A DNA stretch of 32,000 nucleotides from contig BAAFSQ010000069.1 of NCBI GenBank assembly GCA_054661495.1, positions 12,234 to 44,233 of the forward strand, given 5' to 3'. The stretch is from Zygophlyctis sp. KS116. Taxonomy: Eukaryota; Fungi; Chytridiomycota. Under the pieces are notes generated by a model. The model saw nothing but the letters and a program-made list of their open reading frames with translations. It had not been told where the DNA came from and made no database searches. Shown here piece after piece: positions 21,162-29,092 of the stretch (its first letter is position 1; every line of letters begins with the position of its first letter). Made by a program: the position numbers and the translations under genes.

Positions 21162-22650
21162 TCATTCCTTTGAGAAAAAGTCCAAAATGGTTTTTTTTCT
21201 TTTTTTGACGTGTGGTGGTGGGGGATCAGAGAGTTTGAGGGCATAATGCCAGTCCGAATGCTCCAATTTTTGATTCAAACGAATCATAGCAAAGCATTCG
21301 GGACACTGTACAAGATCTTTCTCTAGCCAATTTGACAAAAGTCCTTGTTTTGAATCAACAGCTTCTAAATTTGTCAGAGAAAATTCAATTCTTGAACACG
21401 GAAATTCTGCTCTTTCAATTTTAAAAAGAGAAAGTCCTTTAGCTGCAATCATTGAAGGTGAATCTATGATTCCTATAGGTCCTGAACGAGTTTTTTGCAC
21501 ATGATTAAGAGTCATGCATAATACTAGAGTTTTCGGTCTCCTAGAATTTGTTTCAAATTCATAAACAATTCTAGCATACAATTCAGATGATAGAATTTCA
21601 ATCCATGATTTTACTTGATCAGAATTAGTAAGATTTGGTCTAAATGTTTTGCATGCAGCCATAGATTTTACTAAATTATTTTCCACAACTTGAATTAGAA
21701 ATATAAAATACCTGGATCATCATCAATTCCACGAATTATATTATAAATCCAATCTCCAGAGTCTTTATCAATCACTTTCTTGAAATCATCAGCACTTTTA
21801 GACCACAAATCTCCACAATTTAAGATTCCAAAAGAAGATTCTAAAAGAGAACCTAATTTCCCTCCAAGTCCCTTAATTTTTGTAGCTGGCAATTCTCGTA
21901 AAAAATCTAAAACTTGAGACTGGCATAAAACAGACTGCTTATTAGGCTTATGCATTGAAGACACTAATTTGGCCAATGTCTTATTATGCGCAATTCCAGA
22001 AGAGCAAGTATAACCACATTCTTTAAATATTGCATCTCTGATATCTTGACAAATTTCTGCTCCTATTTTCAGTCTCCAATCACTACCAAAAGACTCTAAA
22101 TTATTCCCAATATAAAAAGTTCCACTAGAATCCCAATCTATCATTTCTTTCTGAGTCATTTTTAGCAATCATACCATTCTCAACCAAATCTTTAATCCTT
22201 TCATCTACTACTCCAGTTAAATCCGCGTACGCTTCATCAATCGAAGCTCTTTGAAAGACTGGACAGTATCTCTTTATAATTTTCATGATATCTTGACTAG
22301 CTTTCCTATAAAAATCCAATGAAACTTTATGTGTTTGATAAGAAACGTTAGAATGATAATTTGGAACAGATTCCCCTTGTGCATAAGTTGCAACATGCAC
22401 CAATTTCAATTCTAAAACTTTAAATATATAAATTACCTGGGCATTTTTCCAATGCTTCTTTTACATTACAATGCCTAGAAATCCCCTTTTCTCTTGCAGC
22501 ATAATTCACAGCAATCAATCCTTGCCATTGTTGCACAGCTATAATTAAAATTTAGAAATTACCTAGAGGAACATCAAATGGGATTCCAAGTCTTACATGT
22601 TCCACTTGAGTATAAAAAGCATCCATATCTATATGCAAAATCACCCTCAT
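21162..22650 (-). CDS. RAD30: DNA polymerase eta (Y family)
   Basis: HIDMDAFYTQVE, VQQWQGLIAVNYAAR, LVHVAT, KVSLDFYR, RASIDEAY, GIAHNKTLAKL, GLGGKLG; UBZ CPEC..EHSDWHYA; NLS KKRKK; PIP box TILDFF. Four introns. Confidence 0.95.
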
Positions 22651-26423: not shown

Positions 26424-26647
26424 ATGCTCCCGTCGTACTTTCCTCTCACAACAAAGAAATGTAAAGATGTTTCTCAAGTGTTTTTTGGATGCTTTGAATC
26501 CGAATCTATTCCTAATGGTGTAATAATCTTTTTTAAATAAACTAATAGGATCCACAAGTTGCTAAAAAGGCTGTACTGACCTGCCAAGAACAATTAAATG
26601 CATACAAGGAATGCATGGATAAATTCAAAACTCCAAAATGGCACTAA
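26424..26647 (+). CDS. Small twin-CX9C protein (mitochondrial intermembrane space type)
   Basis: Not in the ORF track. MLPSYFPLTTKK-CKDVSQVFFGC-FESESIPNG|[32 protein letters not shown]; intron 26520-26548. Confidence 0.8.
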
Positions 26648-27497
26648 TGATCTCCCATAGAGTATTTTGCCTTTTCAGATCTCTGCCAGCGAGAATATTC
26701 AATACTTGTCATGCCTTTAATATCTTTGATTTAGTTTTTTTCTACATACTTAAAATCCAATGAAAATGCAATAAATAGGATAAATAAGTCCATACTATAG
26801 TACAAAAGGTTGTAAAAAGAATGCAAAGAGTCAGAATAGTAGGTATAGAGAGATTATAAGCAGTTTCTAATAGAATGAGAGTAGAAAAGTTACGGATTTT
26901 CATGAAGAATGTTGAGTCTGTGAAATATGTAGAAAATACATAGACACTAGTACAAAAATTCATAAAACTAAAAGCACATAATAATATCATGCTGGTTATA
27001 TAGATTCTAGTACTTTAAATAAGAAAAATTACTTGTAATTGGATCTTGCAATGCAATTATTAACGTAAAAACAATGATGATCTAGTCTATAGACACACTT
27101 GTTACAGTATTTACAATGAAGAGATTCCATATGCCTATTATTAAACATGGAAAATTACACATTTGCCTTGCAAACTAGACAGTATCTAGTTTCAAGAGTA
27201 GAATTGGTTTTCAAATATATTCTCTTGTCTGCAGGATCAGAGAAAATTAGAATTATAGCTGATATAATTAGTAAGCTCCATAGTATAGAGAGAATAAGAG
27301 TTACTGGAACGCGTGTCGACAAGAGTGAAATAAATGGATCATAGAGAGAATAATAGAATGGACCAGATCCTAGGACAAAGATCCATGAAAATATAAAATG
27401 GATAGATAATGGCCTATAGATTATATTAAATATTGTACAGTTGGCATCCGTGTTTTCTAGCCTTTCTTTTTAATAAACTTTCCAAATCTATATCCAT
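26644..27497 (-). CDS. DHHC palmitoyltransferase (ZDHHC1/11-like)
   Basis: RKHGCQLPL..W, two TM segments, [46 protein letters not shown], two TM segments, [13 protein letters not shown]. Four introns. Confidence 0.92.
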
Positions 27498-27625
27498 TTT
27501 GTCTCTTGGTTTATTTGGGTTTTTTTGGATTCTAGTGCTTGGAATGAAGAGTGAAAGTTTTTGTAATTATTCCGTGAATCTTGTAGGGGTTTATTGGTTT
27601 TAGGTTCTGGGCAAACAGAGTCAAA

Positions 27626-28176
27626 ATGTGGAAAGTGAAGAGAGATTCTCCATTAATCCCTCTTCTAGACCAGCTATATTTAGAATATACGCTAGTAGAC
27701 TCTCCTCTTGACCTTTCTGGTCCTGATTTTAGTGTTTTATATTTCTCTAAATCCTCTTGTTTTAATGATTTAAATAATAAACGTTTAATTGTCCTTGTTG
27801 ATATGAGATTTATCAAAGATTTATCAATTCTTAGCATGAATCTATTCAGGGATGCTCTAGTAGATGAAATAATTCCAATCTTTTCTCAACAAGACTTAAA
27901 GGAATACCTATCATTCCTTACTCTCAAAGAACCAGAAAATGAGAAATTACTTGATCATTTAGAGTCTAAATTAATCATGGATTGGATGAATATGCTACAA
28001 GTGTCTAGTCATGGTAATTTTTTATAAAATAACAAACAGAGTCTTTAATTCTACAAGAGGAATTTGGGAATTTTATTAATATCTCTAATGCAACGATTCA
28101 AGATTTTAGAGATTTGTCACTAGACAAAACATGTGCAACTCTTGTTTATGAAATGTTTTCATTTAAAAAAATTTGA
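27626..28176 (+). CDS. Small ERCC1/XPF-like fold + HhH protein, possibly SPO16/SCRE (or FAAP24-like)
   Basis: Intron 28014-28039 extends the ORF to HESLILQEEFGNFINISNATIQDFRDLSLDKTCATLVYEMF, an (HhH)2-type tail. Family assignment is tentative. Confidence 0.5.
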
Positions 28177-28439
28177 ATGAAGAGTGGAGTACAAAGGCAA
28201 GTTTTACTCTTGTACAAGGATTTCTTGAAAGAGATTAGTCTAAAGGAATTTGATTCTCAGAAAAGATTTAAAGAGTATATAAGATCTGAATTTAAGAGAA
28301 ATTTAGAAATTCCAAAAAATGAATTTAATACTATTGAATATCTCATTAGGTAACTTTGAGAGTATTTGATCTATCTAGACAGGGAAGAAAGAAACTTGAA
28401 ATCTTTAAAGATAAATCTTGCACAGACATTTCAATTTAG
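28177..28439 (+). CDS. SDH6: Succinate dehydrogenase assembly factor 1 (LYR motif)
   Basis: Not in the ORF track. MKSGVQRQVLLLYKDFL..IRSEFKRN..EFNTIEYLIR|QGRKKLE; intron 28350-28378. Confidence 0.9.
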
Positions 28440-28675
28440 ACTCTCTGCATCTCTAGGCTTTCCAGGTTTAGGTCCAGGTTGAAACTTGCAGTGATCTACT
28501 TTCTCATGATTATCCTGTCATGGTAGGAGTATTTTGAAGAATGAGGAATTTGAAATTATTAGGTAATGCTTGAAAATAAAAACTCGAGAATTACTAGATA
28601 ATTTTGACAAATTTTAGAATTTTATAAATTATCGGGAATAAAATAAGAATAAAAATCTAATAAAAATCGAAAAAA

Positions 28676-29092
28676 ATGCTCAAAATGAGATTTCTCAAGA
28701 CAACATTTTCCACAAAAAGTCATTTACTAAAAGACTCTCTTCAGACAAAGACTTGGTCCCTCTCCCAACAATCTAAAAGCAAAGCAATGTCTGGTCCAAG
28801 GTATTTTTCTAAAGTTTAATTCTAGATTTGAACAAACAGATTTCCAAGTCCAAGTAAGTCTAATAATGTTTAAAATTAGCCTAATCCCCCAATCGCTCAA
28901 GAACTCATTGCTAATGTTCCTGTTAATTTTGTAGATGCGCGAGTCGTTGCCTGTGATGGAGGAGACCTGGGACATCCAAAAGTATTCTTGAATTTGGATC
29001 AGGGTAAACCAATGTCATGTGGTATATCAAATATTTTTTTAAAAAACTATATAGGATACTGTGGACTCCGTTATCAAAGAAGAGAACATTAA
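28676..29092 (+). CDS. NDUFS6: Complex I 13-kDa zinc-finger subunit (zf-CHCC)
   Basis: Not in the ORF track. Presequence-like N-terminus, TWSLSQ..AMSGPRFEQTD..QPNPQSAQELIA..VVACDGGDLGHPKVFLNLD..CGYCGLRY. Three introns. Confidence 0.93.

Follow-up and report, generated by a model that had tools for sequence, protein, structure and literature searches.

How can a nuclear gene be expressed when its start codon follows the stop codon of the preceding gene without a single nucleotide between them? The question is raised by a locus in the window (by which we mean the whole 32,000-nucleotide stretch of DNA that was analysed, taken from an assembly of 12.7 Mb in 1175 contigs), where SDH6, a gene of the LYR family, begins directly behind another gene on the same strand that we call X. 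A first-pass annotation of this DNA saw in the arrangement the best candidate for an undescribed operon-like expression system, and offered three mechanisms for it: a dicistronic mRNA with termination-reinitiation, a readthrough fusion, or a promoter for SDH6 buried in the upstream coding sequence. Below, we describe the junction and its counterpart in a diverged relative, the spacing of genes elsewhere in the genome, and the readings that these observations favour or disfavour. Taken together, the zero-spacer junction of X and SDH6 looks more like the product of a shrinking genome than like an operon system of a new kind.

The junction and its genes

The window is AT-rich (31-39% GC) and gene-dense. 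The features around the junction are as follows.

26644-27497, minus strand: five-exon gene (gene finder)
27498-27625, between divergent genes: spacer of 128 nt, presumed promoter region of X (gene finder)
27626-28013, plus strand: X exon 1, an open reading frame of 129 codons plus 1 nt
28014-28039, plus strand: X intron, 26 nt, GTAATT...ACAG, donor score +3.9, of modal length
28040-28176, plus strand: X exon 2, with the TGA stop at 28174-28176
28177-28349, plus strand: exon 1 of SDH6 (LYR family, resembling SDHAF1), Pfam PF05347 Complex1_LYR
28350-28378, plus strand: SDH6 intron, 29 nt (splice scoring and gene finder)
28379-28439, plus strand: SDH6 exon 2, with the TAG stop at 28437-28439; the protein terminus is ...IEYLIRQGRKKLEIFKDKSCTDISI
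28440-28675, plus strand: spacer from SDH6 to the zf-CHCC gene, 236 nt
28676-28800, 28826-28853, 28880-29021 and 29055-29092, plus strand: the four exons of the zf-CHCC gene (resembling NDUFS6), Pfam PF10276, E = 2.5e-11

On the plus strand the junction reads ...TTT AAA AAA ATT TGA ATG AAG AGT..., in which the TGA of X (28174-28176) is followed immediately and in the same frame by the ATG of SDH6 (28177-28179). The zero-spacer, in-frame junction reported at first pass is thus confirmed, both by direct reading of the sequence and by the agreement of the gene models. TGA is an ordinary stop codon in this organism, ending 27 of 127 confident genes. An identical junction is present in four assemblies, namely the window itself, a Logan contig (L002, 100% identity) and contigs from a second and a third lake metagenome (L003, 99.6%, and L001, 93-96%, respectively); because L001, L002 and L003 derive from other samples than the window, the junction is no assembly artefact. 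Compared with L001, the 128-nt spacer upstream of X has both indels and substitutions, with its coding flanks conserved, and the 236-nt spacer downstream of SDH6 is variable. Near the X intron the two sequences differ at only two positions, both intronic. The end of SDH6 exon 1 is AG in the window and CG in L001, which is synonymous under the modelled splice (AGA to CGA), and the two differences in SDH6 exon 2 are also synonymous.

X is a two-exon gene spanning 27626-28176 and specifying 174 amino acids, and SDH6 a two-exon gene spanning 28177-28439 and specifying 77, both on the plus strand. A self-trained ab initio gene finder (a 3-periodic Markov model combined with splice-site matrices and dynamic programming), to which neither gene had been supplied, called both exactly as in the hand models. 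The 26-nt intron of X falls within the modal size class of the genome (24-30 nt). A longer version of this intron, extending to 28057, had been implied by the first-pass annotation and would also be in frame, but the 26-nt model scores better; we prefer the latter on three grounds, which are the prevalence of 24-30 nt introns beginning GTA, the score, and the retention in a diverged relative (L005) of the six extra residues that it encodes. The peptide joined over the intron is kept, as SH-E-SLILQEEFGNF in the window and SH-E-ALLLQEYFGNF in L005.

As regards membership of the LYR family the label SDH6 is sound, the protein scoring 30.2 bits (E = 4.4e-7) with PF05347 over residues 7-57, where the curated cut-off is 24.8, and a profile search of the genome recovers the locus above that cut-off. 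The Pfam, PDB, Atlas, protein and fold queries described here consisted of the separate exons of X and SDH6. With SDH6, the closest Atlas clusters are all generic LYR and the PDB search gave no match. The translation contains LYK at residues 12-14 together with a IEYLIRQGRKKL block, and these fit what we take to be the hallmarks of SDHAF1/Sdh6, an N-terminal L-Y-R/K and a C-terminal IE-x-L-x-R-x-G-x-K/R-x-L. For X, an exon-by-exon search found no Pfam family, exon queries gave no PDB sequence match at E < 0.6 and no usable Atlas match, and the AlphaFold model of an exon was poor (pLDDT 44). The first-pass label for X, SPO16-like, which would imply likeness to SPO16 or to the ERCC1 central domain with a helix-hairpin-helix tail, is neither supported nor contradicted by these results. 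A word and HMMER search with exon 1 through collections of 5.8 billion and 1.8 billion proteins returned only two relatives, P0001 (98% identity) and P0003 (38%), beyond which a profile-based word search found no others. A JGI metagenome scan with X gave no matches, and a metagenome scan with an exon of the zf-CHCC gene gave 80 distant loci, none of them with X or SDH6 alongside. The protein collections that were searched held no transcript-derived spliced protein for the locus.

The diverged relative, L005, is a metagenome contig of 2 kb from a different sample of the same lake series, in which X, SDH6 and the zf-CHCC gene occur in the same order. Its X protein, P0003, is 35-38% identical to that of the window in exon 1 and 60% in exon 2, and has the same MW start, an intron at the matching position and the same ...KK-x-stop C-terminus; the MKSG N-terminus of SDH6 is likewise conserved. 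In L005, X and SDH6 overlap as ATGA, with the SDH6 ATG at 1339-1341 and the X TGA at 1340-1342, so that the two reading frames differ, and SDH6 overlaps the zf-CHCC gene by 8 nt (zf-CHCC ATG at 1619-1621, SDH6 TAG at 1624-1626). The gap between X and SDH6 is therefore 0 nt in the window and -4 nt in L005, and that between SDH6 and zf-CHCC is 236 nt and -8 nt, respectively. Synteny in a relative had been suggested as a check on the locus; the gene order proves to be the same, with X and SDH6 still tight, and judged by these sequences the pair is kept tight over considerable divergence. That the gap between SDH6 and zf-CHCC can be either 236 or -8 nt implies that loss of spacer DNA is ongoing and tolerated.

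Some further features of the locus may be mentioned. A weak A/U hairpin, UUCAUUUAA...UUUGAAUGAA, at 28159-28180 surrounds the UGA-AUG junction of the window and is not conserved in L005. The SDH6 start in the window is flanked within 14 nt by stops in all three frames (TAA 28164, TGA 28174, TGA 28178), an arrangement that L005 does not conserve. The five-exon minus-strand gene at 26644-27497 encodes about 250 amino acids, apparently a membrane protein; it occupies a seemingly ORF-poor stretch with a ribosomal protein SA gene on one side and X on the other, and a counterpart is kept in L005 (337-697).

Gene spacing and signals in the wider genome

Gap statistics were collected over 232 kb (the window plus 200 kb, L006-L025), amounting to 1.8% of the genome, and rest on the gene finder described above, by which at least one gene (HEATR5) was wrongly split. 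In this sample 170 genes were called and genes span 89% of the DNA. A histogram of same-strand stop-to-start distances, which the first-pass annotation had recommended with a peak near zero in mind, does contain a cluster at -4 to +1; it comprises nine of 97 junctions, one of them the falsely split HEATR5, or about 8%, and there is a possible dip at +2 to +9 between this cluster and the bulk. Abutment is, however, equal in convergent pairs, so that the cluster is not peculiar to genes on one strand. Five of the other eight are confirmed by Pfam as pairs of unrelated families, namely COG4/HDAC, malate synthase/unidentified, CDC45/WD40, NMD3/glycosyltransferase and Pol eta/next gene, the last partner having no Pfam match on the exon tested. 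Such junctions join unrelated, mostly large genes, and functional coupling is not apparent. At one of them (window 21162-21165, minus strand) the stop of the Pol eta-like gene, which has IMS_C plus UBZ domains, overlaps the next same-strand ATG as ATGA, and a TCGGAC motif lies 91 nt upstream, within the Pol eta coding sequence.

Median gaps depend on orientation, being 182-185 nt for divergent, 82-87 nt for same-strand and 22-32 nt for convergent pairs (Mann-Whitney p values for the differences of 7e-4, 0.049 and 4e-4). The gaps are additive, which implies about 90 nt of upstream control region belonging to each gene and almost no 3' region; the pattern fits a monocistronic organisation as the rule, in which most genes have an upstream control region of their own. 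Stops overlap in five of 34 convergent pairs (as TTAA, CTAA or TTAG), each time by exactly 4 nt, and same-strand and divergent pairs also touch within the 232-kb sample. Convergent pairs cannot share an mRNA, and abutment that is independent of orientation is what deletion up to the coding edge predicts and an operon mechanism does not. The proposal of an undescribed operon-like expression system is accordingly not upheld, in view of the equal abutment of convergent genes and of a ranking of gaps (divergent, then same-strand, then convergent) that points to one promoter per gene. Examples of overlapping convergent stops are found at window 29089-29092 and 26644-26647, and at L019:5655-5658 and L021:4712-4715. 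About 400 spliceosomal introns were predicted in the 232 kb; almost all measure 24-30 nt, and they begin with a nearly invariant GTA and end in AG.

The LYR family itself provides a further comparison. The genome has six other LYR loci (among them L106:1489-1712, L112:1477-1840 and loci in L107, L109 and L110), and convergent genes touch or overlap four of these, at gaps of -4, -4, 0 and 0; of the remaining two, one is separated by 1 nt from the same-strand gene that follows it and the other by 8 nt from the same-strand gene that precedes it. A special tie between small mitochondrial LYR genes and dicistrons was considered and rejected, since LYR genes abut their neighbours in every orientation.

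If genes have their own control regions, these might be recognizable where genes are tightly packed. The motif GTCCGAT(C)/ATCGGAC is enriched 5-15 times ahead of start codons, where it occurs in both orientations and for the most part at a distance of 20-70 nt (example sites are L021:3312 and L019:8856); among genes whose upstream gap is roomy, 33% have it there, and coding sequence contains it at a rate of 8.5% per 150 nt. In five of 28 tight same-strand pairs it lies in the coding sequence of the upstream neighbour, twice at -38/-39, an enrichment that is marginal (p about 0.05-0.09; 0.085 against the coding background). From these occurrences inside upstream coding sequences it seems probable that the genome contains buried promoters. 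In the 150 nt that precede the SDH6 ATG there is no motif of the GTCCGAT type, as is also the case for two thirds of ordinary genes. A conserved AACGATTCAAGA block in X exon 2 was tried as a variant promoter motif and rejected, as it is not enriched upstream of genes. A general A-run leader was rejected too, since a run of at least six A's precedes just 5% of starts and is missing from every other tight pair, and no depletion of ATG was seen in the last 40 nt of the upstream genes of tight pairs. The hexamer ACGCGT, which resembles the fungal MluI cell-cycle box, shows a 38-fold enrichment upstream of genes over coding sequence; one ACGCGT site lies within the minus-strand gene at 26644-27497, at 27321-27326.

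Signals for 3' ends were sought too. None of AATAAA, TAATAA, TAATTA and ATTAAA occurs between the stop of X and the stop of SDH6. Downstream of the X stop, AATAAA is found only in the 236-nt spacer (at 28575, 28637, 28648 and 28659), and in L005 the first AATAAA after the X stop, and the sole one along the three-gene chain, is 8 nt past the stop of the third gene. Since no such hexamer lies between the two stops, the RNA of X probably continues through SDH6. Across the sample, A/T-rich hexamers are most frequent within 50 nt past stops, tight pairs included; AATAAA as a positional marker of 3' ends was found to be too weak, as it follows only about 14% of stops.

How SDH6 may be expressed

The reading to which we incline, with a confidence only a little above the balance, is that the zero-spacer junction reflects extreme genome compaction with overlapping transcription units, the start site of SDH6 being buried in X. 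Deletions would have stripped away intergenic DNA until the coding sequences of X and SDH6 touched, and shrinkage would halt at this point because any further deletion would alter the proteins. The mRNA of X would start in the 128-nt divergent spacer, continue through SDH6 and end at the AATAAA cluster at 28575-28664. SDH6 would be expressed from a transcript of its own with a very short leader, the start site and core promoter lying inside the last exon or the intron of X; both this start site, which would have to fall in exon 2 of X or close to it, and the 3' end of X are positions that we infer from sequence. The two transcripts would overlap and have a common 3' end, SDH6 forming untranslated 3' sequence in the RNA of X, and each protein would be translated from the first open reading frame of its own RNA. 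Direct results are the models of the genes, the junction itself, the fact that it persists in a relative as diverged as L005, and the pattern of gaps across the sampled genome; this pattern has the property expected from compaction, in that intergenic DNA is nearly absent in every orientation, convergent pairs included. Among the three mechanisms originally put forward, the promoter buried in upstream coding sequence is therefore the best supported, and the readthrough fusion is the one that fails, the reading frames of L005 being different. It should be noted that the tightness of X and SDH6 (0 and -4 nt) at only 35-38% identity in exon 1 would also be explained by selection for translational coupling.

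Such coupling is the essence of the chief alternative, a nuclear mRNA with two cistrons (or three, in the lineage of L005) in which a capped transcript from the X promoter is translated twice, with reinitiation at the AUG that follows the UGA. Viral UAAUG and AUGA restart sites are cases of termination-reinitiation, and the zero spacer of the window and the ATGA of L005 are both classic geometries for it, with stop and restart codons in close proximity. The junction stays tight across a large divergence, canonical poly(A) hexamers are absent from the X stop to the end of SDH6 and, in L005, until the end of the third gene, and an A7 run (Lys-Lys) stands just 5' of the AUG in both lineages. There are also precedents: fungal reinitiation after a full-length reading frame has been demonstrated over a 9-bp spacer (PMC10352335), and polycistronic transcripts have been reported from Agaricomycetes (PMC4503453) and green algae (PMC11291117). 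Against this stand the convergent pairs, which abut in the same manner, and the gap pattern, which fits one promoter per gene. X has 174 codons, and reinitiation after long reading frames is normally inefficient; moreover, a bare stop followed by the next reading frame without a spacer element yielded no downstream protein in the fungal experiments (PMC10352335). Sought as enhancers of reinitiation, a conserved 18S-complementary motif or a folded structure did not emerge: TGGGA, resembling TURBS motif 1, at 28065-28069 reads TTGGA in L005, no stable conserved RNA structure was found (folding z = -1.8 and -0.1, with predicted structures unlike each other), and the T at position -3 gives SDH6 a weak start context. 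Finally, the spacing of SDH6 and zf-CHCC, 236 against -8 nt in the two lineages, argues that tightness is not required there. On balance we regard a dicistronic mRNA as unlikely, albeit a serious contender. Its most far-reaching form, in which X-SDH6 (X-SDH6-zf-CHCC in L005) would be a conserved polycistronic nuclear mRNA of an early-diverging fungus, with spacer-free UGA-AUG/AUGA reinitiation yielding the mitochondrial assembly factor and, in L005, a protein like a complex I subunit, and the 8% of junctions at -4 to +1 would be a genome-wide class of the same kind, seems to us more doubtful again.

The remaining explanations are much less probable than either compaction or a dicistron. The first is that the junction is an artefact of gene modelling, X being unreal or ending elsewhere, or SDH6 starting elsewhere. 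The lack of a known family for X, its two relatives only and its low pLDDT could be taken in this sense. However, L005 keeps the MW start, the intron position and the ...KK-x-stop end at 35-60% identity and with many synonymous changes, from which we conclude that X is a real gene, with an orphan protein; the independent ab initio run recovers both genes, and the MKSG at the start of SDH6 is conserved. We accordingly think an artefact very improbable.

Still less is to be said for a fusion protein of X and SDH6, made either by readthrough of the UGA or by removal of stop and start in an intron. The two reading frames of the window are indeed in register, and a GT..AG pair at 28155-28184 (30 nt), the only in-frame one across the junction, would join them. 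This putative intron nevertheless has a donor, GTTTTC, scoring -3.5 and an acceptor scoring -2.5, as against +2.6 to +3.9 for real donors, which are almost all GTA, and the N-terminus of SDH6, MKSG, is conserved. We know of no readthrough context in which UGA is followed by A. Because the frames differ in L005, where the junction is ATGA, an in-frame readthrough fusion is in any case not a conserved feature, and it would be surprising if it operated in the window.

A dicistronic mRNA translated by leaky scanning, in the style of green algae, agrees with the algal loci (PMC11291117) only in the short distance between the reading frames and in the small mitochondrial product. The start of X (AAAATGT) has A at -3 and is in good context, and X contains 14 internal ATGs, compared with 9.4 +/- 2.8 in shuffled sequences, so that there is no depletion; in the algal system, restoring one ATG to a methionine-less upstream reporter reading frame brought downstream output to background (PMC11291117). 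Given these three observations, leaky scanning is considered excluded. Nematodes and kinetoplastids resolve polycistronic precursors by spliced-leader trans-splicing. Such a mechanism here has the tight same-strand spacing in its favour and nothing else; the nearest AG 5' of the SDH6 ATG is about 53 nt away (28123-28124), the other tight junctions are without an acceptor just before the ATG, and the idea can hardly be entertained. To our knowledge, spliced-leader trans-splicing is not known from fungi.

Comparison with known systems

The closest parallels to compaction with overlapping transcripts come from microsporidia, where transcripts overlap, beginning within the upstream gene or terminating within the downstream one, and 5' UTRs rank with the shortest on record (PMC3629993, citing Williams 2005 and Corradi 2008). 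In microsporidia (Encephalitozoon, Antonospora) and in nucleomorphs, as here, hardly any intergenic DNA is left whatever the orientation of the genes, and adjacent coding sequences abut or overlap by a few bases, which forces the signals for promoters and 3' ends into the neighbouring genes. There are differences nonetheless. The present organism is a chytrid-like fungus, of free-living type or parasitic, with a 12.7-Mb assembly and a full set of respiratory-chain genes, and it has kept many introns, shrunk to 24-30 nt. Overlapping transcripts have been observed in microsporidia, whereas here they are deduced from DNA.

Three other systems bear on a dicistronic reading. In Glarea lozoyensis, IGG1 with its 9-bp IGG6 element supports termination-reinitiation, and works in yeasts and Aspergillus (PMC10352335). 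The adjacent or overlapping stop and start codons and the A-rich leader of the fungal reinitiation dicistrons are matched at the X-SDH6 junction, but the latter has no spacer element and no conserved upstream motif or structure; the resemblance is one of DNA sequence. Agaricomycetes have polycistronic transcripts identified from long reads (Gordon et al. 2015, PMC4503453), and there too the genes concerned are fungal same-strand neighbours, which may share one RNA; those transcripts are defined by RNA reads, in contrast to the present pair, which is known from DNA and has zero spacer. Green-algal polycistronic loci are translated by leaky scanning (Gallaher 2021; PMC11291117). They resemble the present locus in having the gene for a small mitochondrial protein tight beside a same-strand reading frame, in some cases with stop/start overlap, and differ from it in that the start context of X is strong, that X contains 14 ATGs internally and that the small protein is encoded here by the downstream reading frame, behind a longer one.

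Were the compaction reading to be correct, the locus would be a clear and conserved case of shrinkage of a fungal nuclear genome with retention of introns, in which promoters, leaders and 3' ends are written within neighbouring coding sequence. Signals so placed would constrain the termini of proteins and make gene calling harder in metagenome-assembled fungal genomes, and the organism would offer a test bed for minimal eukaryotic promoters. Were the pair instead a true dicistron, it would be a case, on a cellular mRNA of a fungus, of spacer-free reinitiation after a 174-codon reading frame, and a relative would have a version of it with three genes. Under either reading the differences in spacing between the window (0 and 236 nt) and L005 (-4 and -8 nt) constitute a natural experiment. 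As a candidate polycistron, the chain of three same-strand genes at L005:728-2005, with its overlaps of 4 and 8 nt, is better than the pair in the window.
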